Made by a program: the position numbers and the translations under genes. Below the pieces are notes generated by a model that worked only from the letters and a program-made list of their open reading frames with translations, was not told where the DNA came from and did not search any database. From IMG/VR virus record IMGVR_UViG_3300019776_000324, positions 186,001-250,000 of that record: a DNA stretch of 64,000 bases; one strand, given 5' to 3'. Positions 5,442-59,337 of the stretch are shown piece by piece; position 1 is the stretch's first letter; each line of letters begins with the position of its first letter.

Positions 5442-5472
5442 AAGTACCCACTTTATTGTGGGTATTTTTTTC
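5442..5472 (+). terminator. Intrinsic terminator after the FecR gene
   Basis: TACCCAC-tttatt-GTGGGTA followed by a T-tract. Confidence 0.65.
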
Positions 5473-5484
5473 ATTAAATACTCT

Positions 5485-7533
5485 ATGCTTAAAAAAATAA
5501 TAACAAGTCCTTGGACAGCATTACTAACATTGGCACTAGTAGTTGGATTGCGTGTAGCAGATCCTACTTTTGTTGAAAGCGTTCGTCTGCGCTACTTTGA
5601 CACACTAGTAACTAGTAAACCTGCAGAGGTCATTGGAGTTAGTGTTGTAAACATAGACGAGAAAGCCTTAGAAAAATATGGTCAATTCCCTTTCAGTCGC
5701 GATATCTACGCTTCCGTTATTCGAGAACTTTATCGTCGTAACGCTGGTCTGGTGGTTTTTAATATTCTTACTCCTGATCGCGATCGTATGGGTCAGGATC
5801 AATCTTATATCCAAGCACTCAGACAGTTCCCAACCATCCTACCTAGTATTGGATCTACACAAACAAGAAACCAACCAAGAAACCCAGGAACGATTATAAT
5901 TGGACCATACCAAAATCAAATAGTTACATATCCTGGAATTATTGCCAACATACCTGCTGTTGAAAATGCAGCTGCTGGAGTTGGAATTGTAAACACTTTT
6001 CCAGAAGTTGACGGAGTAGTAAGACGCATGCCGTTGGTAGTAATGAGCGATCAAAAACTTTATCCTGGTATGGCCATGGAAGTGTTGCGTGTAGCAGCAG
6101 GAGACTCGACATTCCAGGTTAAACTAAACGAGAATGGTGTAGAGAAAATGCGCATTCCAAAGTTTGGACCTATTGCTACTGATAGTTTAAGTCGTATTTG
6201 GATTGACTGGAGTTTGGTTCCGGACAAGTATAGTTTAACCAATCTGCCAGATGATTTTGAAGGTGAAATAGTTATTGTGGGTGTGTCAGCCCAAGGATTA
6301 AGTAATCCAGTAGCAACAAGCATGGGTGAAATGCTACCACAAGATTTACAAGCAGCAGTATTAGGCACAGTAATAGCAAATAAAGATCGACCTGCTATCA
6401 CTCGCCCAGATTGGGCCGATGGCGCTGAAATTATATTTGTGTTAGTGGCAGGTATTTTATTATTATTTTTATCAAGGTGGGTTTATGTTGGACTTTGTGC
6501 ATCTGTTGTTATACTCGGCGGGAGTTTACTATTTTCTAGTTGGGCTTATGGAAGTCTCGCTTGGCTTGTGGACGCAACTGTTCCGGTCGCTGGTCTTGTC
6601 ATTGTGCTTCTTCATGCTTATGGTGTTAAGTTTGTAAGTGAGTTCTTACAGAAGCAAGCGATCAAGAAACAGTTTGCTGGCTACTGCTCTAAAGAAGTTG
6701 TGGATATGTTGCAGAAGGATCCAGACTTGATCAAGCGTGGTGTGCGTAAGGATGTAAGTGTTATGTTTAGTGACCTGCGTGGCTTTACTCCTATTGGTGA
6801 ACACTACGGTGATGATGTTGCTGGACTTGGCAAGTACATGAACGGCTATATGGATGCTATTAGTCAGCCTATCATGGACAACAAAGGCATGGTTATCAAG
6901 TATGTAGGAGATGCAAGTATGCATATTCACGGTGCTCCTATTGAAGATCCTAATCACGCAAGAACAATCGTTGCTGTCGGTCTACAAATGTTAGATGCTG
7001 TAGACGAGTACACTAAGCTAATGGAAGCACAAGGCTTACCTCCTGCGGCAATGGGCTGGGGTTGTAACTCGGGCATTGGCTTTATTGGCGAAATGGGAAG
7101 CACAGATAGACACAGCTATGACATTTTAGGTGATATGGTTAGTACGGCGGCACGATTAGAAGCTCGTTGCAAAGCATATGGTGTACTATGTATTATTGGT
7201 GCTGAAACTTACAATCGTACCAAAGATGATTTCTTCTACCTGTTGTTAGATAACTTACAACCAAAAGGTAAAACTGTGGCAGACTTGATCTACACAGTAT
7301 TACGCACCAAAGGCGCAGACTACACCAAAGAACTATCAACACATAACAAGATGCATGCATTATACAAAGAGAAAAATTTTGATGCGGCCGCTATCTTATG
7401 TGGAGAATTAATTGGTAAGTTTGGCGGACAAATGGACAAGTACTATAAGATTTGGATCGAGCGTTGCGAGTTTATGAAAGAACAGAACTTACCAGAAAAC
7501 TGGAATGGTGAATTTGTAGCGCACGAAAAATAA
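5485..7533 (+). CDS. CHASE2-domain membrane-bound class III adenylate/guanylate cyclase
   Basis: N-terminal TM; CHASE2 (IDEKALEKYGQFPFSR, DGVVRRMPL); three TMs; cyclase motifs MFSDLRGFT, KYVGDA, GEMGS, YDILGDMVSTAARLE. Start placed at ATG 5485 (ORF track 5458). Confidence 0.92.
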   Translation: MLKKIITSPWTALLTLALVVGLRVADPTFVESVRLRYFDTLVTSKPAEVIGVSVVNIDEKALEKYGQFPFSRDIYASVIRELYRRNAGLVVFNILTPDRDRMGQDQSYIQALRQFPTILPSIGSTQTRNQPRNPGTIIIGPYQNQIVTYPGIIANIPAVENAAAGVGIVNTFPEVDGVVRRMPLVVMSDQKLYPGMAMEVLRVAAGDSTFQVKLNENGVEKMRIPKFGPIATDSLSRIWIDWSLVPDKYSLTNLPDDFEGEIVIVGVSAQGLSNPVATSMGEMLPQDLQAAVLGTVIANKDRPAITRPDWADGAEIIFVLVAGILLLFLSRWVYVGLCASVVILGGSLLFSSWAYGSLAWLVDATVPVAGLVIVLLHAYGVKFVSEFLQKQAIKKQFAGYCSKEVVDMLQKDPDLIKRGVRKDVSVMFSDLRGFTPIGEHYGDDVAGLGKYMNGYMDAISQPIMDNKGMVIKYVGDASMHIHGAPIEDPNHARTIVAVGLQMLDAVDEYTKLMEAQGLPPAAMGWGCNSGIGFIGEMGSTDRHSYDILGDMVSTAARLEARCKAYGVLCIIGAETYNRTKDDFFYLLLDNLQPKGKTVADLIYTVLRTKGADYTKELSTHNKMHALYKEKNFDAAAILCGELIGKFGGQMDKYYKIWIERCEFMKEQNLPENWNGEFVAHEK

Positions 7534-20936: not shown

Positions 20937-21527
20937 ATGCCAAACTTAGTACCCATTGTAGTAGAACAAACCTCAAAAGGCGAGCGCAGTTATGATATAT
21001 ACAGTAGACTCTTGCGTGATCGCATTGTCATGCTGGATACAGATGTAAACGAGCATACAGCCAGTTTAGTAGTGGCGCAAATGCTGTTTTTAGAATCAGA
21101 AGATCCAGACAAGGACATCCTATTTTACATCAATAGCCCAGGCGGTGTTGTTACAGCTGGCATGGCAATTTATGACACAATGAACTTTATCAAGCCCGAT
21201 GTTTCAACTGTAGTAATGGGCCAAGCATGTAGTATGGGTAGTTGTTTGGCACAAGCAGGCGCACCTGGCAAGCGTATTATTTTGCCCAATGCTAGACACA
21301 TGATTCACCAGCCATCAGGTGGTGCTCGTGGACAAGCAACAGATATTCAAATCCAAGCACAAGAAATATTAAAAATGAAGAAATACTTAACAGAGATTTA
21401 TGTCAAGCATAACAGTGCTGGTAAAACCTTTGAAGAATTAAGTGCTGATATGGAACGCGACTTCTTTATGAGTGCTGAAGAAGCTGTGGCCTACGGCCTA
21501 GCTGATCGAGTAATTAGCAGTAGATAA
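20937..21527 (+). CDS. clpP: ATP-dependent Clp protease proteolytic subunit
   Basis: [33 protein letters not shown] (Ser), MIHQP (His), ERD (Asp). Confidence 0.97.
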
Positions 21528-22828
21528 TGTCCTTTAACCAAACCTTTTGCTCAAGCCCGTGGTTTCATATGCGAATTAATAATTCGGGTTCATATGAATA
21601 CTGTAGGTGGCAGCAAAGGGATGGTGAATATCGTGTTGATCTAGAGAATAATATACAGCAACAAGCACCCTTGGTATATTTTCAAAAGACCATGGCACCT
21701 TTACGAGCTAGCATGTTAAATGGCCTGGCAATTGATGGCTGTAAAGACTGCTATAAAATGGAACAGCACGGCAAAGTAAGCGGACGCCAGAAACAACTGT
21801 TAAAAACAGGAATTCAACAACAGTATTTTGAAAAAAGTTTAATCAGTAGCCCATTAAAAGCAGACTTTGATTACAGCAATCTTAATCACGGGCAGACACT
21901 GAGGACTGTAGTTGACTGGCAAATAGATCTGGGCAATTATTGTAATGGAGCCTGTGTATTTTGTATTCCCGAAAGCTCTAGCAAACTGGCCACGGAATTT
22001 AAACAATTAAAGCTGATAGATAAACTACCCCCAAGATCCTGGTGTGATGATCCTGTACTGTTAGAAAAGTTTATTAAAGATTTAATTGCGAGTCCCAGTC
22101 TTGAGTATTTGCATTTTATTGGCGGCGAAACATTAATTACTCCAGGATTTAAAAAGATATTGCAGGCATTAATTTCAGCTGATCTGTCTCGAAATATAAC
22201 CATTGGGTTTACTACCAATCTTATTTCCTGGGACGATGAATTAATCAACAATATACTGCCCGAGTTTAAACAAATTAATCTTGGACTGAGTGTTGAAGCA
22301 TTGACTGAGGTCAACGACTATGTAAGATATCCCAGCCGTTTGGCCACTACTAATGATATCTTAGACCAATGGGTTGCAATAGGAAAAGCTCAAGGCTGGT
22401 TAATGCAACTCAGAATCACTCCAACCTGTTTGTCCATAGCAGATCTGACCACCGTTTATGATTATGCGTGGACTCATAATTTAAGTGTGGAAAGTTGTAA
22501 TTTCTTAGAAGAACCAAAATTCATGCGCATCAGTGTGTTGCCCATAGAATATCGACTGGCAATACAAGATCAAATGAAAACCTGGCTGGCAAGCAAAACT
22601 GATATTTCCCAAGAGCAGATCATCAACACTAGAAATCCTGAGTTTGCCCGCCAACAAATTTGTCAAGATGCTGAAAGTTATATCAATTATCTTGAAACTG
22701 CTGTTGATGAAAGCTATCGATTACCTGACTTGATTGATTATCTAAAACGATTAGAATCAATTCGTAATAATAGCATTATAGATTATCTACCACAATATGA
22801 AGAATTATTCAGAAGTCAAGGATATTAA
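21527..22828 (+). CDS. Radical SAM protein with N-terminal Cys (twitch/SPASM-like) domain
   Basis: CNGACVFC, GGE, FTTN; N-terminal FC..PW...YC and CKDC. Confidence 0.85.
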   Translation: MSFNQTFCSSPWFHMRINNSGSYEYCRWQQRDGEYRVDLENNIQQQAPLVYFQKTMAPLRASMLNGLAIDGCKDCYKMEQHGKVSGRQKQLLKTGIQQQYFEKSLISSPLKADFDYSNLNHGQTLRTVVDWQIDLGNYCNGACVFCIPESSSKLATEFKQLKLIDKLPPRSWCDDPVLLEKFIKDLIASPSLEYLHFIGGETLITPGFKKILQALISADLSRNITIGFTTNLISWDDELINNILPEFKQINLGLSVEALTEVNDYVRYPSRLATTNDILDQWVAIGKAQGWLMQLRITPTCLSIADLTTVYDYAWTHNLSVESCNFLEEPKFMRISVLPIEYRLAIQDQMKTWLASKTDISQEQIINTRNPEFARQQICQDAESYINYLETAVDESYRLPDLIDYLKRLESIRNNSIIDYLPQYEELFRSQGY

Positions 22829-43615: not shown

Positions 43616-45123
43616 ATGAAATCATATCGTTTTTTAGGTGAAGAAGCAGAAGCATTGGGTAACCGTCTGGACCATGCTCGTAAATGTGCCACTGGCGCAA
43701 AGACCGCTTGGGCAAAGAATTACTGGCAACGAAATGTAGAACGGTTATTGTTTCAATGGCGTCAATTACCTATTCTACACGACGGCGGCGCACAGATGAC
43801 TATCATTCCTAAATGGATGGTCAGTTACGATTTTTATGAAAAGTCTGGTGCTCATGAATATACTGGCATTACTGAACGAGCATATGACAAGTTATTTAGA
43901 GAAAGTGCCAACTTGGATGCAAGTTGGGAAAATCATAGATCAGCAAGATTAGCAAAGGCACAATAATGGCAATAATTTACAAAGATAAACACGGCAAGTT
44001 CTTTTATGTACAAGAGCGTTATTCGGTTGACCAAAAAGACTGGATCCGTTATACTAATACTATGGGTGAGGAATTTACTTGCCTTAAAGACGCATTTGAT
44101 GAACGATTTACTCCACAGGAGCAATAAATGACTGAAGAACGCTTGATGGTAGCAGAAGCTGTAATGGCCGGCCAGATTCCAGAATATCACTTGACACAAG
44201 ATGAAATTGATGAGCTGTTTGAACGATGCTGTGACCTGGCCACAGAAAAGTTAATGGCAGAAGCTGAAGAGCGTGGTTGCTCAGTGTTCTACGGCGTTGA
44301 GGGCGATACAGTACAATAATGTCCGACATCAAGTTCAAACGATTCTCTGCAGATAAACAGGAACAAATTCAACAATTTGTTGCTTATGCACAGATGTGCG
44401 GTTTGTCTGGCAAGGATATCCGTAGCATCGGCGATAAGCTGGATCGTGATCGTAAGGCTGAAGAGCGCCGTCAAAACTTGGAAATAGTTCAAGGCTTTGA
44501 ATGTTTACCCATCGGCGACGACAAGCGTTATAAGAATCATGGTGTAGGTTATTTTAACCAAATCTTAGATCGCAGATTCAAACTTAAAACTGCCCGCGGC
44601 CCTTACAACTTCAAACAAGATTACAACGGTTGGGAAATTAAAAGTTTAGAGACTGGCACAATTAAACGGCATCGTGTTGAAGTTTATGATTATCAACTTT
44701 CTGAAAGCAGTGGCTGGGAACGCAGAATGCGATATGCAGTATTGCTTGATATTTCATTTGGTAAATTGAAGTTAGATTTTTAACATGGATCACCAATTTA
44801 TTGTCATGTGGTGCAACGAAGGCTTGGAGTATGTGGCTGACATTACTGCTGATCAACAGCGTGTGGTGTGGGAAAACTTACAAGGTCACGAAAGTCCAAG
44901 ACATGCGTATGCCAATCCTTTCCATCTTAGATTGCGGGCACAACTTAACTTGGACCGACATTATGAGATATATATTGTTGATGGTGCAGAAGGTATAACG
45001 GAACAAGAAATTAAAAATATGTTTCGCTATGATCCACAAGGATCTGCAGATTTAATACGCAGTAAAGGTATTTGTTTTTACAGTAATCGACGAGATACAA
45101 CTCAACAATCGGTTATTGTCTAG
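43616..45123 (+). other. Hypothetical early ORFs (43616-43966, 44128-44319, 44319-44783, 44785-45123)
   Basis: SD-preceded ORFs; early promoter at 44027. Confidence 0.6.
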
Positions 45124-45129
45124 TTTTCG

Positions 45130-45352
45130 AACGCCGGGTGATACCGGCTAGTGCGACCCGCACGATAACTGGTCTTATCAACCGGGGGTGGTCCCAGTCT
45201 AACCCTAACTGGCGCTGGCAATGCGATAACGAGCCCTGTCGAGCAGCGGATGAGGCCTTGCGTAGTGTGACTGACACTGATCGGTGAACTCACAGTAACA
45301 GTAAGAATAGCTGTTGCAATGCTAAGGATATAAAGGACCGCCGGGGGCTGAA
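45130..45352 (+). ncRNA. Candidate structured non-coding RNA of unknown family
   Basis: GC-rich intergenic island with successive hairpins (45133-48, 45151-63, 45164-79, 45194-212) and a nested domain closed by 45232-37/45344-49 and 45246-49/45338-41; strand assumed. Confidence 0.55.
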
Positions 45353-45420
45353 GAGCATTTTGGTTGACGGACACAAGTATTTTTGCTATACTATAGCTCT
45401 TAATAACTTTTAAGGTGACA

Positions 45421-45873
45421 ATGAGACCAATTTGCGTAAACCTAGGATGTAACAAATTTGCCGTGCCTGTGCGCGGCCGTGTTGGCGAACCTGGAGTTAG
45501 GTATCGTGTGTTTTGTGGCGATTGCCATATTAGTAGCTACAGCCAAACACCGTTGCGTCCCGGAGTTACACCATTTAAGAAGAATCAATGTAGTAATTTA
45601 GATGGTCGTTTGGGATTTCCGTGTATTACTGATCACAGCAAGTTTGATCAAGTCAGTACCAAAGGCAAATTTGAAATCGATCACATAGATAGAGATCCTA
45701 ACAACAATGACCCTGCCAATTTACAAGAATTATGTATGCACTGTCACAAAGAAAAGGGCATGCGACAGGGCGACTTTGACAGGCACAAAAAAAAAGGTGA
45801 AATAACTATTTCGGGCAGACGCTTGAGATGGTCAAGTAAAATTATGTTTAACGAATTATTTGATGAAGCATAG
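45421..45873 (+). CDS. HNH endonuclease with Cys (Zn) motifs
   Basis: EIDHIDRDPNNNDPANLQELCMHCHKEK; own promoter TTGACG-17-TATACT. Confidence 0.85.
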   Translation: MRPICVNLGCNKFAVPVRGRVGEPGVRYRVFCGDCHISSYSQTPLRPGVTPFKKNQCSNLDGRLGFPCITDHSKFDQVSTKGKFEIDHIDRDPNNNDPANLQELCMHCHKEKGMRQGDFDRHKKKGEITISGRRLRWSSKIMFNELFDEA

Positions 45874-45894
45874 TATAGTGTGTTATAATAAACA

Positions 45895-46467
45895 ATGGCA
45901 AAATATCTAGACCCAGCAATCCTAAAAGAACTCGACGAATACCGAAAGCGTATTTTTAAAGAGCGTGAAGAAATTTATCGCAAGCACAAAATTGATGTGC
46001 TTGACACAGACACGCTGAGTTCCTTATCAGTTTACGAAATCGTCAGTCAATACGACGCCGACTATAATATTAACTTTGCTAGAAATGGCGAAGATGCAAA
46101 ATCTCAAGGTGTGCTAATTGAACAAAAATGCAGTCGTGTTGAACGACGCAAGCGATTAGGCACTTACCCAGATGCACTGTATCAATTTCATGCCATGGGC
46201 GATCTAATATATCCAAGATATATCTTAGTAAGTCGAGACAAAACCACATTAGAACTAGTTAGGATTTACGATATCAGTGCTCCTAAAAATATCAAGGTAG
46301 TTCAAGACTGTTTAATGGGCGAGCGCCAGGCTTGGGAAGATCGTTGTGCCATTGATAAAAAATATATGAAACGAGATGTAATTGGTATTCCTGAATCTGT
46401 ACTCAAAGACAATTTAAAAATTACAAAAACATTAACCGTTAACAATTGTGAAGTAACTATTGCTTGA
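45895..46467 (+). CDS. Putative PD-(D/E)xK restriction-endonuclease-like protein
   Basis: GEDAK....IEQKCS motif; adjacent to a methyltransferase. Confidence 0.45.
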   Translation: MAKYLDPAILKELDEYRKRIFKEREEIYRKHKIDVLDTDTLSSLSVYEIVSQYDADYNINFARNGEDAKSQGVLIEQKCSRVERRKRLGTYPDALYQFHAMGDLIYPRYILVSRDKTTLELVRIYDISAPKNIKVVQDCLMGERQAWEDRCAIDKKYMKRDVIGIPESVLKDNLKITKTLTVNNCEVTIA

Positions 46468-46479
46468 TATAAATACGTG

Positions 46480-47727
46480 ATGATATATACCCGGCAACAA
46501 TTTTTAAAACAGTTTAAACTAAACAAAAATATTAGTTATACAGACTTTTGCTCAAAGATTGCTGTTCTCAACGGCAGTGATACTTCTGGGCAATTTGTTA
46601 CTCGCAGTGACTTGGATACCTTTGTTAAGAAGAACGCAACCAAAGACAATCGTGTCAGTAGGCTAGACGATTACAAGAAGAAACTGTACCAAGTGCTGGT
46701 TACAGATGCAGATGAAGCACTAGGACAGTGGTTTGACCGTACTGCTGCTATCTCTGAAAATATTGATTATTATTTTCAACTTCCAAATGCCAGCATACTT
46801 GAAGACAAGACATTTGCTGGGCGCACACATTCCAAGTATGGTCGCTTGTGTAAGAATATAAACTTTGAGCAGTTCTTCAACACACGCAAACTATACTCCA
46901 ATGACTTTGAATATACATTTGGCTTGATGCGAGCCATGTTTGAAGATTTTAAAATTCGTAATAGTTTGGTTGGCCCTGCTATGTTTGATCATATATGCCG
47001 TATAGAAGATCGTAACTACGGGCAGTTCTGGACTGACTTTATGATGGGGTGTAATCGTGCAAGCGTATTCAATCCTGTAACATATCGTGGCATACTAGAT
47101 GAACTATTGCCAGGAGAAACATTGTTTGCACCTGTTATGGGTTGGAATAGCTATCAGCTGGCATTTTATAACAGTCACTTTAAACATTTTGTAGCTACTG
47201 ATGTGATTCCAGAAGTAGTCAACAATGGAAAGAAATTACACCAAGAGTGGTTAGCGTATAAAGATCGCAGTTTATTTGAACTAGAGGACAAGACTGTTAA
47301 GTTATATTGTTCGCCCAGCGAAGAGCTAGCAAAGGGCACAGACTTTGTGGCTATGTATCAAGGTCAAGTTGATGCGGTGTTGTTTAGTCCACCATACTTT
47401 GACTTAGAGATATATCCCAGTGCTGACCAAAGTTTTACTAACTATCCCAACTATCAAGATTGGTTATTGAACTATTGGGAAGCTACAGTTAAGACAGCTA
47501 AACAAGTTCTCAAACCTGGCGGCCGCTTTGCTTTTGTAATTAGTAACTATCGTAACAAGGCCAAACAAGAAGTCGCTATTAGCCAAGACATGCGAGATAT
47601 AGTTGAATTACATTTAGGTAAACCTACACACTATAAAGTACAGTGGTCTGCTATTGCTGGAGGTCGACAAGCTATGAAAACTAGAGATGGTAATTTTGAA
47701 GATCTCTGGTTATTTGAAAAGGATTAA
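46480..47727 (+). CDS. DNA amino-methyltransferase (N4-C/N6-A type)
   Basis: Degenerate motif I FAPVMGWNS, ATDV, catalytic SPPYF, LKPGG. Confidence 0.75.
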   Translation: MIYTRQQFLKQFKLNKNISYTDFCSKIAVLNGSDTSGQFVTRSDLDTFVKKNATKDNRVSRLDDYKKKLYQVLVTDADEALGQWFDRTAAISENIDYYFQLPNASILEDKTFAGRTHSKYGRLCKNINFEQFFNTRKLYSNDFEYTFGLMRAMFEDFKIRNSLVGPAMFDHICRIEDRNYGQFWTDFMMGCNRASVFNPVTYRGILDELLPGETLFAPVMGWNSYQLAFYNSHFKHFVATDVIPEVVNNGKKLHQEWLAYKDRSLFELEDKTVKLYCSPSEELAKGTDFVAMYQGQVDAVLFSPPYFDLEIYPSADQSFTNYPNYQDWLLNYWEATVKTAKQVLKPGGRFAFVISNYRNKAKQEVAISQDMRDIVELHLGKPTHYKVQWSAIAGGRQAMKTRDGNFEDLWLFEKD

Positions 47728-47728
47728 C

Positions 47729-48775
47729 ATGAATTACTTAGACGAAATTCGAGCTCGATATGATATCAAGGACTATGTAGAAAGTCCTGTAACTATACCA
47801 GAGCTACCTACAGATGGCATTGTACTAATTGTTGGCACAAGTGGGTCAGGAAAAACTACAATATTAAAAACAGTAGACAACCCAAAACCTATTGTGATTG
47901 ATCACGCTAAAACTGTCATTGAAAACTTCTCTACTCCTGAGCAGGGTGAAGAACTGTTACTGGCTTGCGGGCTAAGAACTATTCCTGCTTGGTTCCGTGC
48001 TCCTAATACTTTAAGCAATGGTGAGTTTCATAGATTTGAAATTGCTGTAGGCTTAGATCAAGGACACACAATCATTGATGAGTTTACAAGTGTTGTTGAC
48101 CGTGACACTGCTAAAAGTCTTGCTTATAGTGTTCGCAAGTATTTTGACCGTAATCCTGGTGTGTTGTATATTGCATCATGTCACAGAGATATCATTGACT
48201 GGTTAGATCCAGAATGGGTGTACGATACCGACTTACAGGTATTAGAAAACCGGAGGTCACCCTTTCGTCTGGGACGACGACCCGACATTACCCTTACCAT
48301 CAGAAGCACAGGTCCGCAGTATTGGGATATGTTCAAAAAGTATCACTATCTCGACACAAACATGAGTCGTAGTGGTCACTATTATGTTGGCCTTATTGGA
48401 GATAAACCTGTGGCATTTCACGCAGTATTACATTCGACCAACAGAGATATTCATAGTTACTGGCGTGGACATCGCACAGTTGTACTACCTGAGTTTCAAG
48501 GCATGGGAATAGGCACAGCATTTAGCGATGCTATTGCTCAGATCTATGTAGACAAGGGCTTAAGATATTTCTCTAAAACAGCACATCCTAGCTTTGGTGA
48601 ACACCGCGAAAAGTCTGACCTATGGCGTCCAACCAGCACTAACAAGAAAAGTCGTTTAGGTAGCTATCTACTTAAAGACGGTTCAGCTCGTAAGATGCCC
48701 GGCTACGGTGGAACTACTACAGCCCGAGATGCTGGTCGTATTTGCTACAGTCACGAATATATTGGCCAAAAGTGA
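47729..48775 (+). CDS. ABC-type ATPase fused to a GNAT acetyltransferase
   Basis: Walker A GTSGSGKTT, signature LSNGE, Walker B IIDEFTSVVDR, H-loop SCH; GNAT RTVVLPEFQGMGIG. Confidence 0.85.
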   Translation: MNYLDEIRARYDIKDYVESPVTIPELPTDGIVLIVGTSGSGKTTILKTVDNPKPIVIDHAKTVIENFSTPEQGEELLLACGLRTIPAWFRAPNTLSNGEFHRFEIAVGLDQGHTIIDEFTSVVDRDTAKSLAYSVRKYFDRNPGVLYIASCHRDIIDWLDPEWVYDTDLQVLENRRSPFRLGRRPDITLTIRSTGPQYWDMFKKYHYLDTNMSRSGHYYVGLIGDKPVAFHAVLHSTNRDIHSYWRGHRTVVLPEFQGMGIGTAFSDAIAQIYVDKGLRYFSKTAHPSFGEHREKSDLWRPTSTNKKSRLGSYLLKDGSARKMPGYGGTTTARDAGRICYSHEYIGQK

Positions 48776-48776
48776 T

Positions 48777-49700
48777 ATGGAAAAACTTGAATATGGACTA
48801 TCCAGTGTCGGACTAGGAACCAATATTGGTTTCATGTCGGCGTTGATTGACGCAGGAATTCCAAGTTGCATTTATGTTGATGATCAAAATCATCTCATGT
48901 TCAAGTTAAAACGCATTTTTAACATAAGCGACGATGTATTGGATGTGGTGTTTGATCCAGACTACAATAACAACATAACTGACCAACTGGGCGATCAACT
49001 AAAATATTTTAGTCCGTATTTTGATGTAGATTCAATTAACGCATTTGATCAGCAGTTCTCAATTAACAAACAAAACAAGCCAGCTATTGGCCTAGCAATG
49101 TTTCATCGCAGTAACCCTGGGGAAAACATAGATAACCGGTATCCTCACAGCAAGTTATACTCCAGAGAAGTATATGCCAACATTTTTAATCTAATTGTTG
49201 CCAGCGGATATGATGTAATTACATTCAACAGTGAAAACATAGATATCGAACACAAAGTTTGGCAACTCAACGAACTATGCGAGTGCGTTATTGGATATGA
49301 AGGCGGAATTGCTCATATTGCACACTTATTAAAAATACCAAGTATTGTTCTTCCGTATCATCATTGTGGAGATGGTGTCAGACCCTTATGGGCCGACAGT
49401 GGCATACTGGATGTTAACCTATTACATGCTCCTCAACTGTTACACATAGATCGTAGAACTTATTTTTTAAGTTCCCCAAGAGAAATTGTCAATTGGTCTC
49501 CTGATCAACTCAAACAAAAAATTCAAGACTTGCACGATCAAAAAGGAAACAATGTATTATTTGGCGCAGGAGTTACTGTAAAGAATGACACATTACAAGT
49601 GTTTACTGATGTTCCTGGGTTAGAAACAATGTCACCGTGGTTATCTACTTTTGAATTTGAGTTTGTAACAAACTATATTAAAGGTCGCACATTTGTCTAA
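48777..49700 (+). CDS. Glycosyltransferase family 9-like protein
   Basis: VIGYEGGIAHIAHLLKIPSIVL resembles GT9 xIGxDSGxxHxAxAxxxP. Confidence 0.55.
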   Translation: MEKLEYGLSSVGLGTNIGFMSALIDAGIPSCIYVDDQNHLMFKLKRIFNISDDVLDVVFDPDYNNNITDQLGDQLKYFSPYFDVDSINAFDQQFSINKQNKPAIGLAMFHRSNPGENIDNRYPHSKLYSREVYANIFNLIVASGYDVITFNSENIDIEHKVWQLNELCECVIGYEGGIAHIAHLLKIPSIVLPYHHCGDGVRPLWADSGILDVNLLHAPQLLHIDRRTYFLSSPREIVNWSPDQLKQKIQDLHDQKGNNVLFGAGVTVKNDTLQVFTDVPGLETMSPWLSTFEFEFVTNYIKGRTFV

Positions 49701-50445
49701 ACAATTACATGCGTTTGGTGATAGTTTTATTGTAGGGGACCAAGATGATTTTTTGCACGAAGTCCCTACTGCTACTCACGGCATGCCTTGGGACCAAAGA
49801 CTTGAATATTTAAAAACACAAGTAAGTTTTGTTTCAATACTGGCCAAACACTACGGATATGATTTAACAAATTATGCCGAGCGTGGCACGGGTAACTATC
49901 CGCAGATTGATCGCTTATGGACAAATTTAATCAACGGTAATATTAAACCAGGCGACTTGGTTTTGTTTGGAATCACTACTACTATTAGAGATCGATTCAT
50001 GTTGCATGAAGTTGATAGATGCACTAGTGATAAATTTGGTGCGTTTATGGTTGATAGGAACCTGTTGGATAAGAACAGTGATCGCCAGCGACTGTTAGAA
50101 CTTGATTATTTTTATATTCTTAGTTTGCTGGATCAGTTGAGCAAAAAGTTTAATGTTAGAATTATCAAGTTCAATCTGTTTGACAATTCGTTAGATCATG
50201 CCAACTCCAAAATAACTGATGTATGTCAAGTTGACGACTTTGTGGGCTGGGCAACTCCAGGCAATACTTTGGTTGATATTCTTAACGATTCCTGGGGACA
50301 GGGTGTATTTTATACCTTTGCACACGAAGAAATAAAAATACCAACAGGATACGAATACTTGTACACAGCTAAAAAACATCCTAGCATTGAAGGACATAAA
50401 AAGATTGCCGATTGGTGGATTTTGAACAATATTGTGTCAACTTAA
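49693..50445 (+). CDS. SGNH/GDSL hydrolase-like protein
   Basis: AFGDSF, G.GN and HPSIEGHKKIA blocks. Confidence 0.7.
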   Translation: MSKQLHAFGDSFIVGDQDDFLHEVPTATHGMPWDQRLEYLKTQVSFVSILAKHYGYDLTNYAERGTGNYPQIDRLWTNLINGNIKPGDLVLFGITTTIRDRFMLHEVDRCTSDKFGAFMVDRNLLDKNSDRQRLLELDYFYILSLLDQLSKKFNVRIIKFNLFDNSLDHANSKITDVCQVDDFVGWATPGNTLVDILNDSWGQGVFYTFAHEEIKIPTGYEYLYTAKKHPSIEGHKKIADWWILNNIVST

Positions 50446-51019: not shown

Positions 51020-51559
51020 ATGAAGACAGTAGGACATAAATTAGAGAAGTTTGTAGTAACCGGTGTCAAGCCAGGACAACCAGAAGATGCGTTCTTTGAT
51101 ATCACAGAAGAATCATTTCCAGGCAAATGGAAAGTAATCGTTTACTATCCAAAAGATTTTACATTCGTATGCCCAACAGAGATTGTAGCCTACGACAAGT
51201 TAACAGGCGACTTTAGTGACCGTGATGCAGTATTGCTAACAGGTAGCACAGACAATGAGTTCTGTAAAGTTAGCTGGCAGAATGCTCACAGTGATTTGAA
51301 GAAGATCACACACAATCAGTTCGCTGACACACAGCGTGGTGAGTTGAGTTTGATCGAACAGTTAGGCGTGTTCTATGCTCCAGCAGGTGCAGCACTTCGC
51401 GCAACATTCATCGTTGACCCAGACAATGTTATCCAGCATGTCACAGTAAACAACTTGAATGTTGGTCGTAGCCCAGAAGAAACATTGCGTGTATTGGATG
51501 CGTTACAAACTGGTGAATTATGTGCATGTAACCGTACAGTAGGCGGGGAGACTCTATAA
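51020..51559 (+). CDS. ahpC: Peroxiredoxin AhpC
   Basis: YPKDFTFVCPTEI, RATFIVDP, VGRSPEETLRVLDALQTGELC. Confidence 0.96.
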   Translation: MKTVGHKLEKFVVTGVKPGQPEDAFFDITEESFPGKWKVIVYYPKDFTFVCPTEIVAYDKLTGDFSDRDAVLLTGSTDNEFCKVSWQNAHSDLKKITHNQFADTQRGELSLIEQLGVFYAPAGAALRATFIVDPDNVIQHVTVNNLNVGRSPEETLRVLDALQTGELCACNRTVGGETL

Positions 51560-52065
51560 TGTCTTTTATCGAGCAAGTCAAAAGTGCCTTGCCTGATTAC
51601 GCAAAGGACGCCAAGTTAAATCTTGATGCGGTCCTTTTGCGTAGTACATTAGATGCTGATGTGGCCATGGGTTGTGCTGTAGCCGCATTGGCCGCAACAG
51701 GCAATGGCAAATTAGTTAGTTTAATTTTAGCCGATGAACCAGCACTAGCTGAATCAGCAATGACAGCCGCTAGCATTATGGCACAAAACAATGTATGGTA
51801 TCCATATGTTGAAATGGCTGATGATCCTGCACTTAAAGGTTTGCCTGCACAGTTGCGCATGAATGCTATTGCTAGCCATGGCGGAACTACCAAGTCAAAC
51901 TTTGAAGCATTCTCATTGGCAGCTAGTATCGTAGGCAAGTGTCACTTCTGTGTAAAAGCACACTACGAAACACTCAAGCAAGAAGGCTATACAGTAGAGA
52001 ATCTGCGTGATATTGGCCGTATTGCCGCAGTAATGAATAGTGTAGCAAAAGTGTTAAATAGCTAA
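51559..52065 (+). CDS. ahpD: Alkyl hydroperoxidase AhpD
   Basis: LPDYAKDAKLNL, MAQNNVWY, LRMN, CHFCVKAH. Confidence 0.93.
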   Translation: MSFIEQVKSALPDYAKDAKLNLDAVLLRSTLDADVAMGCAVAALAATGNGKLVSLILADEPALAESAMTAASIMAQNNVWYPYVEMADDPALKGLPAQLRMNAIASHGGTTKSNFEAFSLAASIVGKCHFCVKAHYETLKQEGYTVENLRDIGRIAAVMNSVAKVLNS

Positions 52066-57506: not shown

Positions 57507-57955
57507 TGATGGATGCCCATTCTCAAATGGCCGAAGCACTAGCTGATAGCATGACTGTATCGGTTAGTGCTCCTGGAACTTATAGTACAATTACCAATGG
57601 CGGGTTTGCCTACTCTAACACTGCTATTACCAACAACGGTGTTGCTACTGGATCCTTAGGACCGTACACTGTTAGCACTGGTTATTCACAACCATGGTTC
57701 AGCAACTCTGCTAGTCCAAAAATCCGTTTAGATGGTGAAGACGCTGACATAGAAGTCAACGGCGAAAGCCTCATGGGCTTGATGAAAGAAATCCGCGAAC
57801 GACTAAATCTCATAACCATTAACGAAAAGATGGAAAAGGAATGGGACGAACTACGAGCCTTAGGTGATCAATATCGTGCCCTAGAAGCCAAGTTAAAAGA
57901 ACAAGGCGAAATGTGGAACAAGCTAAAAGCTATGCCACCGCCTGATATCAAGTAA
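57506..57955 (+). CDS. Hypothetical protein with a C-terminal coiled coil
   Basis: ADIEVNGESL...IRERLNLI...EWDELRALGDQYRALE. Confidence 0.6.
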   Translation: MMDAHSQMAEALADSMTVSVSAPGTYSTITNGGFAYSNTAITNNGVATGSLGPYTVSTGYSQPWFSNSASPKIRLDGEDADIEVNGESLMGLMKEIRERLNLITINEKMEKEWDELRALGDQYRALEAKLKEQGEMWNKLKAMPPPDIK

Positions 57956-59337
57956 TGTCAGCATGGAAAGAGTTTTATAATCAAATTCGCGACCCAAGCT
58001 GGCCCGACTGCGACAACGAAACTGACTTTGAACAACTACCTGACAATATCAAACAAGAGTGTATCAAAGTGTTTGGTTATCAGCCCAACCAGTTTAAAAA
58101 AACTTCTAAATTAAAAAATCAAGTATTTCCTATTAGGTCTGAAACAAGTTGTCAACTCAAATGGTCCTGGAGTACATTATTTTTAACCACAGAAGAAACA
58201 GCCAGTTGCCACAGAACTGACCATCATAAATTTGATACAGATCAATTTGATTTTCATAATACACCAAGTAAATTAGACGACCGTCGGCGTATGCTTGAAG
58301 GGTTGTGGCCCAAGCGCGGTTGCAACTATTGTCAAGATATTGAATCAGCGGGCGGCCAAAGTGATCGCATTACTAATTTAGATTTTCCTGGCATACATGC
58401 ACCTCCAGAATTAGACACTGATCCAACCGCGGTACATGTTACTCCTAGAATACTTGAAGTTTATTTTGATAACACTTGTAATCTAAAATGTCTATACTGT
58501 GGCCCGCACTTTAGCAGTTTATGGGATGCTGAAAATATAAAATTTGGGCAACCTGCATTTAACAAAAGCAAAAACATTGAGCAAAATAAACAAAAAATAT
58601 TTGAATGGCTAAAAGTCAACGGAAAACATTTAACTCATTTTAATATTCTCGGTGGTGAACCGTTGTATCAAAGTGAACTAGAAGAATGTTTAGAATTATT
58701 TGATCAGTATCCAGCACCTGAGCTTAAATTACAAATTTTTACCAATCTTAATTGTCGATTGCCCTATCTACAAAAAATAGTACAACGGGTTGGTCAATTA
58801 GTTGATCAAGATAAACTAAGAGAATTTGAAATTACTGCTAGTTTAGATTGTTGGGGAGCTCCGCAAGAATATGTTAGATATCCGTTAAACTTGGTTGCAT
58901 GGGAAAAGAATTTTGAATATTTGTTAACTCAAGACTGGATTAATTTAATAGTAAGTTCAACAGTAACGCCACTTACAATAAAAACTCTTCCGGACTTGCT
59001 TGAAAAAATACAACAGTGGAATCAGCAAAGAATTGTGCATCATTATCAAAATAGTGTAAATGGTCCTAGTTACATGTTCATTGATATTTTTGGTGACATT
59101 TTTGCCGAGGATTTTAAACGAGCATTGGATTTTAAACCTGCTGATACTCCTGAGCAACAATCAAGCAAAGGTTATCTTGAAGGGATTGCAACGCAGTCTG
59201 GTTCCAAAGGTCCAAACTTAAAAGAAATCAAAAATCTGTTTAATTTTTTAAATGAAATGGATCGCAGAAGATCGACTAGTTGGCGTGAGGTGTTTCCTTG
59301 GTTGATTGTGGAATTTAATAAACATGGGTTATATTGA
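57955..59337 (+). CDS. Radical SAM protein (second copy)
   Basis: CNLKCLYC, GGEP, FTN, EYVRYP; N-terminal CQLKW..SCHR and CNYC. Confidence 0.85.
   Translation: MSAWKEFYNQIRDPSWPDCDNETDFEQLPDNIKQECIKVFGYQPNQFKKTSKLKNQVFPIRSETSCQLKWSWSTLFLTTEETASCHRTDHHKFDTDQFDFHNTPSKLDDRRRMLEGLWPKRGCNYCQDIESAGGQSDRITNLDFPGIHAPPELDTDPTAVHVTPRILEVYFDNTCNLKCLYCGPHFSSLWDAENIKFGQPAFNKSKNIEQNKQKIFEWLKVNGKHLTHFNILGGEPLYQSELEECLELFDQYPAPELKLQIFTNLNCRLPYLQKIVQRVGQLVDQDKLREFEITASLDCWGAPQEYVRYPLNLVAWEKNFEYLLTQDWINLIVSSTVTPLTIKTLPDLLEKIQQWNQQRIVHHYQNSVNGPSYMFIDIFGDIFAEDFKRALDFKPADTPEQQSSKGYLEGIATQSGSKGPNLKEIKNLFNFLNEMDRRRSTSWREVFPWLIVEFNKHGLY

Follow-up and report, generated by a model that had tools for sequence, protein, structure and literature searches.

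A predicted Type II restriction-modification pair with probable ACGT specificity, next to an ATPase-GNAT gene in a T4-like jumbo phage

Four adjacent genes in a viral genome recovered from metagenomes encode an HNH endonuclease, a PD-(D/E)xK-like nuclease, an amino-methyltransferase and a fusion of an ABC-type ATPase with a GNAT acyltransferase, and they raise the question of whether they act together as a single DNA modification and restriction system. They lie in IMG/VR record IMGVR_UViG_3300019776_000324, a viral record of 344,244 bp that has direct terminal repeats and a G+C content of 40.5%, of which positions 186001-250000 (64,000 nucleotides, referred to here as the window and used for all coordinates below) were analyzed. 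The major capsid protein of this genome is of the T4 gp23 type (PF07068, 1e-97), and the source was therefore assigned as a T4-like jumbo phage; it is known only through metagenomes, and no near-identical phage was found in a search of phage records. We refer to the nuclease-fold gene as ORF2, to the methyltransferase as MT and to the ABC-ATPase-GNAT fusion as AG.

The four open reading frames (ORFs) are present at 45415-48775, adjacent and co-oriented on the + strand, as described in an initial annotation that joined them into one late module. The HNH gene, the ORF2-MT pair and AG do not, however, form one conserved module; the conserved unit is ORF2 plus MT. On balance we favor, with reasonable but not strong confidence, a mosaic of three independent units gathered in a hypervariable slot: a mobile HNH gene, a Type II restriction-modification (R-M) cassette directed at ACGT, and an ATPase-GNAT gene that borders the slot. 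The features that matter for this argument are as follows.

45421..45873, + strand: HNH endonuclease, free-standing, with a Cys-rich N-terminal region (Pfam, PHROG)
45860..45889, + strand: sigma-70-like promoter, TTGATG-18-TATAAT, before ORF2 (consensus scan)
45895..46467, + strand: ORF2, predicted Type II restriction endonuclease of PvuII fold, 190 aa (predicted fold)
46468..46478, + strand: T4-type late-promoter box TATAAATA at 46468-46475, overlapping a conserved ACGT at 46475-46478
46480..47727, + strand: MT, S-adenosylmethionine (SAM)-dependent amino-methyltransferase, 415 aa, probable cognate DNA methylase
47729..48775, + strand: AG, fusion of ABC-type ATPase and GNAT acyltransferase, 348 aa

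The nuclease-methyltransferase pair and its promoters

Gene neighborhoods were compared at 57 related IMG/VR loci of MT (43-72% identity to MT) and at the best 79 of 148 IMG/VR matches of AG, including 49 loci from close jumbo-phage relatives (68-88% identity). About 25 of the 57 MT loci, amid at least eight distinct surrounding gene orders, have a homolog of ORF2 immediately upstream of MT and in the same orientation, and in one further record the two genes share a contig at a distance of about 14 kb. The initial annotation named a lack of linkage between the nuclease and the methyltransferase elsewhere among the observations that would refute it, and the linkage seen here speaks in its favor. 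Neither AG nor HNH was found near MT in any of the 57 MT loci, and neither this MT nor ORF2 was found within 6 kb of AG in any of the 79 AG loci. Nor was ORF2 or MT found anywhere in five large AG-carrying relatives, three of which are at least 93% complete. Because the pair recurs in many contexts without AG or HNH, we regard ORF2 plus MT as the conserved unit, and because AG and MT do not co-occur in any of these loci, we regard AG as independent of this MT.

ORF2 has no match in Pfam, PHROG or NCBIfam scans, and a sequence search of solved structures gave nothing useful for either ORF2 or MT. The structure of ORF2 was predicted from 20 homologs at a predicted local distance difference test (pLDDT) score of 94, and a Foldseek search with this model ranked R.PvuII first, with a template modeling (TM) score of up to 0.63. 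The match to PvuII is full-length (Z = 9.8), NhoI and the N-terminal domain of Eco15I follow at Z = 8.1-8.8, and resolvases lie well below. The nearest ESM Atlas cluster (TM 0.81) is viral, with PF09225 assigned to 12% of its members. D67...E76-x-K78 is invariant across 20 sequences, a motif whose spacing resembles that of the Asp...Glu-x-Lys in R.PvuII. The 248 relatives found are all unnamed metagenomic proteins. ORF2 is thus, at the level of its predicted fold and motif, a PD-(D/E)xK nuclease of PvuII type, as initially proposed, and a restriction activity would be expected of it.

The predicted structure of MT (pLDDT 88) has a methyltransferase fold, and its PHROG matches are phrog_12517 (4e-12) and phrog_498, "DNA methyltransferase" (4e-8). 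Both motifs noticed at the outset are present and conserved in 31 homologs. In S303-P304-P305-Y306 the P-P-Y is invariant and the S is kept in at least 90% of the sequences, while FAPVMGWN(S) sits at the motif I position ahead of an invariant TDVIP; PSE is conserved as well. MT is therefore a SAM-dependent amino-methyltransferase with motif IV and motif I. Among viral predicted structures, its top matches (E down to 2.4e-13) are pithovirus proteins annotated as N4-cytosine DNA methylases, together with DNA methylases of phages, in alignments of 300-440 columns, so that part of the N-terminal half is covered too. These matches and the linkage to a restriction-type nuclease point to a DNA substrate, and MT is probably the DNA methylase cognate to ORF2; the same neighbors suggest the N4-cytosine type. 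The 654 relatives of MT are named "SAM-dependent methyltransferase" at best. M.PvuII, an N4-cytosine methylase, is likewise an SPP(Y/F) partner of its nuclease. It differs from MT in motif order, which is I then IV in MT and IV then I in M.PvuII, and MT carries in addition a 200-residue N-terminal domain.

ORF2 and MT are separated by 12 nt without a terminator. The box TATAAATA lies within this gap and ends 4 nt before the MT ATG. TATAAATA is the T4 late-promoter consensus. On the window alone its occurrence is no higher than chance (2 found, at 2440-2447 and 46468-46475, vs. 5.9 expected), and genome-wide it is three-fold depleted (14 vs. about 46 expected; 12 on the + strand and 2 on the - strand). 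Conservation is what distinguishes the copy before MT: the version ATAAATACGT stands directly upstream of 19 of 34 non-redundant MT homologs against a background of 0.3%, and is therefore a conserved element and not a chance match. The box TATAAATA itself is conserved in 18-19 of these 34 loci, and NATAAATA stands 4-7 nt from the MT ATG. Since the box is conserved and the phage has a gp23-type capsid protein, we read it as a predicted T4-type late promoter, in agreement with the initial annotation. Elsewhere in the genome TATAAATA precedes genes of mixed kinds; it lies 4-9 nt before an ORF ATG at 8 of the 14 sites, and one of these eight is found 3 kb upstream of the capsid gene. The distance is only 4-5 nt at six genes, which suggests that late transcripts begin with the start codon or right beside it and are leaderless.

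The promoter of ORF2 appears to be of another kind. A sigma-70 consensus promoter occurs within 70 nt of 11 of 20 ORF2 homologs (background 5%), ten of them with at least 11/12 matches, and a late box precedes only 1 of the 20. Here the -10 box ends 5 nt before the ATG, and a distance of 5-6 nt is often seen in the homologs. These arrangements suggest that the nuclease is made early and the methylase late, and that the messages of both genes are leaderless or nearly so. Since no terminator lies in the 12-nt gap, transcripts that start at the promoter of ORF2 may also read through into MT.

Avoidance of ACGT

The sequence of the genome offers a candidate for the target of the pair. ACGT occurs 22 times in the 344-kb genome where 726 occurrences are expected, an observed/expected ratio (O/E) of 0.03, and the shortage is spread evenly over its length. 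When ORF2-positive DNA is compared with related phages, no other tetramer shows a specific depletion (ACGT O/E 0.11 vs. 0.89; the next tetramer in this comparison has a ratio of 0.80). Median O/E values are 0.15 for 19 non-redundant ORF2-positive loci, 0.46 for 16 MT loci without adjacent ORF2 and 0.92 for 49 AG loci; the ORF2-positive and AG loci differ at p = 1.4e-9 (Mann-Whitney test, with kinship among carriers uncontrolled). In two complete relatives without the pair, the O/E values are 0.90 and 0.95, over 120 kb each. One MT locus is strongly depleted without an adjacent ORF2, and its contig proved to carry ORF2 at a distance of about 14 kb. Even AG, which is not part of the pair, follows this trend: its orthologs average 2.8 ACGT sites, and the AG of the window has none, with other bases where close orthologs carry a site. 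The single ACGT within the four genes, one of the 22 in the genome, is that in ATAAATACGT before MT. CAGCTG, the target of the PvuII R-M system, occurs 232 times (both strands counted). We conclude that the target of the ORF2-MT pair is probably ACGT.

Several observations weigh against reading the pair as an ACGT-specific R-M system. At the level of the proteins, the Pfam PvuII model (PF09225) matches neither ORF2 nor any of 20 homologs, even at E<=5, so that kinship with PvuII holds for the fold only and does not show in comparison with the sequence model of the family; the Pfam match of MT to N6_N4_Mtase is sub-threshold (19.3 vs. a cut-off of 26.7 bits), and its nearest solved structures are tRNA N2-methylguanosine (m2G) methyltransferases. 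Regarding regulation, the capsid gene has no directly preceding TATAAATA, and a nuclease made before its methylase, as read from promoter motifs alone, would reverse the usual R-M order. As for ACGT itself, some ORF2-positive contigs are only weakly depleted (L015-17, 0.54-0.69; L044, 0.85), and some ORF2-negative loci strongly so (L028-31, L056). Small phage contigs with a distant ATPase-GNAT (L131-L141, L146) have 0-1 ACGT per locus where 5-14 are expected in each, and neither ORF2 nor MT was found in the stretches of them examined; host enzymes can thus cause such a loss in unrelated phages. Finally, carriers of the cassette may share hosts or ancestry, which would produce the association without any effect of ORF2.

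The best-surviving alternative builds on these last points. It accepts ORF2-MT as an R-M pair and proposes that ACGT-specific enzymes of the host impose the purge, the cassette having another specificity or having been captured from such a host. The nearly ACGT-free small phages and the weakly depleted ORF2-positive loci are what it would lead one to expect, and other palindromes bear the usual signature of host restriction: AGCGCT (1 vs. 29 expected), AAGCTT (16 vs. 72), GTATAC (24 vs. 90) and GTGCAC (19 vs. 64) are all depleted genome-wide, probably through host-restriction avoidance. The depletion of ACGT, however, follows ORF2 inside one phage clade, and MT loci without the nuclease are on average much less depleted than those with it. 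In 19 of 34 loci, moreover, the promoter of MT keeps an ACGT though the site is purged elsewhere, and a phage that brings a protective methylase has little need to purge a host site. For these reasons we consider a host-imposed purge unlikely, although it deserves more weight than any of the other alternatives, and retain the pair itself as the probable cause.

The ATPase-GNAT gene and its variable slot

AG matches phrog_11143 (3.5e-83) and, above the cut-off, Pfam Acetyltransf_1, with ABC_tran just below the cut-off; against solved structures, sequence searches gave weak P-loop and GNAT matches only. The 23 sequences compared, which range down to about 40% identity, share without variation the Walker A motif GxSGSGK, the signature LSNGE, the Walker B motif IDEF, the H-loop CH and, in the GNAT domain, QGxGxG. 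Homologs were found in 91 phage records in addition to the 148 IMG/VR matches, and the family is overwhelmingly viral. Judging from homologs and from an AAGGA ribosome-binding site, which falls within the 3' end of MT, the true start of AG is probably the ATG at 47729, one base past the MT stop, and not 47687.

AG can be compared with several known enzymes. TmcA and NAT10, the RNA cytidine acetyltransferases, are nucleoside triphosphatases (NTPases) fused to a GNAT domain, and their ATPase is of the helicase type. AG shares the NTPase-GNAT architecture, and acetyl transfer could in the same way be coupled to ATP-driven handling of the substrate; its ATPase is instead of the ABC type, and no scan gave a sequence match to TmcA/NAT10. 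Mom of phage Mu is another likeness, being a late-expressed phage enzyme of GNAT fold that modifies DNA, and in the Burkholderia phage phiE255 the AG homolog follows the tail-fiber genes, as mom does in Mu. AG differs from Mom in its N-terminal ABC ATPase; it has no nuclease fusion, and its GNAT domain matches general models only (Acetyltransf_1, Acetyltransf_7); no link to the Mom family was found, although no search aimed at one was made. Mom was reported to use charged tRNA and not acyl-coenzyme A (acyl-CoA) (PMC13219725), while AG keeps the acyl-CoA-type QGxGxG motif. Closest in architecture is the ABC-GNAT protein of the Tenacibaculum phage pT24, which is 36% identical over 97% of the protein and belongs to the same PHROG family. 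A 2021 review (PMC7824862) gives pT24 as the example for a prediction (Iyer et al. 2013) that such ABC ATPase-GNAT fusions acylate a DNA base; no experimental follow-up was found in the literature searched. In line with this prediction, AG would most likely acylate a nucleic-acid base by means of ATP-driven clamping and acyl-CoA. The part in DNA modification initially ascribed to AG thus agrees with a published prediction, but its partnership with this methyltransferase does not stand.

In all relatives AG borders the slot, and AG together with an upstream cassette occurs in two different genome contexts. In jumbo-phage relatives (loci L070-L118) the slot upstream of AG holds two or three genes, which are either a DGQHR ParB-like gene with a gene for a 185-aa protein; or a DNA methyltransferase of the D12, N6_N4 or Eco57I class, each behind an unannotated gene of 240-290 aa; or HNH or NUMOD3 endonucleases. 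The usual partners of AG are the first of these (L072, L082, L084, L085, L112 and others). The DGQHR protein, of 350-410 aa, is ParB/Srx-like (phrog_1033 at 6e-3; PDB SbnI at 0.011). The 185-aa protein (c5) has no family or structure match; it has a conserved FEHxIP...N motif that looks HNH-like by eye only, and the stop codon of its gene and the start of AG overlap (ATGA). Small phages have a ParB-like gene before the AG homolog. The present genome has neither arrangement: ParB_N (PF02195) has no match in its 344 kb, nor do the c9 and c5 genes of the relatives have homologs there. Some slot loci have depleted palindromes of their own (CTAG 0 vs. 16 expected in L075 and 1 vs. 11 in L089; AATT 14 vs. 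46 in L073), which is suggestive of each cassette having its own avoided palindrome, in loci that are too short for a conclusion. These alternatives suggest that AG adjoins a hot spot at which cassettes of nucleases and methylases gather. This suggests in turn a role of AG in DNA conflicts, and not a pathway shared with this MT.

It is here that the initial annotation has to be weighed as a whole. It held that all four genes make up a late modification and restriction module, in which one base would be methylated and then acylated while HNH and ORF2 cut unmodified DNA. The genes are indeed adjacent and co-oriented; AG, one base past the MT stop and without a promoter of its own, is probably co-transcribed with MT here from the late box; and in relatives a DNA methyltransferase of some class often stands directly before AG. 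Those methyltransferases, however, come from classes unrelated to one another and are missing from about half of the loci, which is better explained by a shared insertion hot spot. Nothing was found that points to a pathway of methylation followed by acylation. Given also the absence of AG and HNH from all MT loci, the absence of MT and ORF2 from all AG loci, and the many contexts in which the pair occurs without AG, we consider a single module very improbable.

The HNH gene fits a unit of its own. It matches Pfam HNH_3 (9.8e-6) and HNH (1.6e-4), both above the cut-off, and phrog_1271 (2.7e-9); its start is the ATG at 45421, with an AAGGTG ribosome-binding site that overlaps the GTG listed at 45415. 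Homologs (35-79% identity) lie upstream of AG in about 11-12 of the 49 related loci, at positions that vary. Because of this sporadic presence at varying positions within the slot, HNH is probably a free-standing mobile endonuclease of homing type. Two further features lie upstream of it.

45126..45361, + strand: candidate structured non-coding element (DNA conservation, RNAalifold, nhmmer)
45364..45392, + strand: sigma-70-like promoter, TTGACG-17-TATACT with extended TG, before the HNH gene (consensus scan, 10/12 matches)

The hexamers of this putative promoter are conserved in the alignment with related loci. The element before it, about 235 nt long and with 50% G+C in a 40% genome, retains 72-82% DNA identity in related loci, and its nhmmer profile matches a single place in this genome as well as 10 related phage loci. 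RNAalifold predicted 41 pairs, among them a long-range closing helix; compensatory double changes are seen at 26, and G-U pairs favor the + strand. The element has no match in Rfam at E<=1, and we consider it a candidate for a new structured RNA at the 5' border of the cassette slot, outside the R-M pair. A group I intron or known RNA around the HNH gene was rejected, there being no Rfam match at the gathering score in the whole window nor at E<=1 in 44500-46700, and no tRNA genes were found.

On the other side of AG, two genes (48777-49700 and 49693-50445) separate it from an AhpC/AhpD-like pair, and most relatives lack them there. For the first, no match to a family or among structures was found, a sequence search of solved structures included; by eye only it resembles a GT-B glycosyltransferase, a candidate label. 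The second matches GDSL/SGNH hydrolases weakly. The window also contains auxiliary genes that are uncommon for a phage, named by eye from their translations.

5458-7533: CHASE2-adenylate/guanylate cyclase
21527-22828 and 57955-59337: two radical SAM proteins
51020-52065: AhpC/AhpD-like pair

How the pair may work and what it means

If ORF2 and MT are an ACGT-specific R-M pair with the timing that their promoters suggest, ORF2 would be made early and would cut unmethylated ACGT in host DNA or that of competing phages. The phage would escape its own nuclease mainly through the purge of ACGT from its genome, and MT would mark the few remaining sites before packaging.

A different use of the same two proteins would make ORF2 a methylation-dependent nuclease like NhoI or Eco15I, with MT marking ACGT on all DNA in the cell, ORF2 cutting the marked sites and the phage itself being nearly free of ACGT. 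It would explain why a purge is needed despite a methylase, and NhoI and the N-terminal domain of Eco15I score within about 1 Z unit of PvuII in the comparison with ORF2. On the other hand, an early nuclease promoter and a late methylase promoter would mean that such a nuclease had nothing to cut during most of the infection, the conserved ACGT in the promoter of the cassette would make a cut in itself certain, and the 22 remaining ACGT sites would be lethal; we give this mechanism scarcely any credence. That MT is an RNA methyltransferase of the tRNA/rRNA m2G type and ORF2 a resolvase or repair nuclease is the least probable proposal of all, in view of the annotated DNA N4-cytosine methylases that head the viral structural matches of MT, its N-terminal half included, the full-length match of ORF2 to PvuII far above resolvases, and the conserved nuclease-methylase pairing with palindrome-specific depletion, which are hallmarks of R-M systems.

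The ACGT-directed R-M pair, as we prefer to read it, departs from the PvuII system in more than its inferred target, for it has no C-protein gene and places an early promoter before the nuclease and a late one before the methylase. Chlorella viruses are lytic viruses with a Type II nuclease and a methylase, for which an attack on host or rival DNA is proposed while their own DNA is spared, as here; in the present phage, protection would come mainly from near-total loss of the site and not from full methylation. R-M genes have also been noted in jumbo phages in the review cited above (PMC7824862). What appears to be new is the Type II R-M pair, with its unusual regulation and a target predicted to be ACGT; the function of AG had already been predicted.

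A wider picture can be drawn, although it is speculative and we put it forward only tentatively. A clade of T4-like jumbo phages may swap Type II R-M cassettes at a single hot spot as weapons: an early leaderless nuclease would shred host or rival DNA, the purge would protect the phage, and the late methylase would imprint the residual sites for the next infection. The ACGT within the late promoter could then provide a methylation-sensitive feedback, and AG could add an independent, acyl-type protection.

The analysis adds two unannotated families, a nuclease and a methylase, to the R-M repertoire, and ACGT is a concrete specificity prediction that can be tested cheaply. It also corrects the idea that AG works with this methylase and locates the usual partners of AG, next to a hot spot of cassette exchange that should be useful for enzyme mining. 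If the order of early nuclease and late methylase and the role of the purge prove true, this would be a lytic phage that uses restriction offensively and protects itself by sequence avoidance instead of modification.

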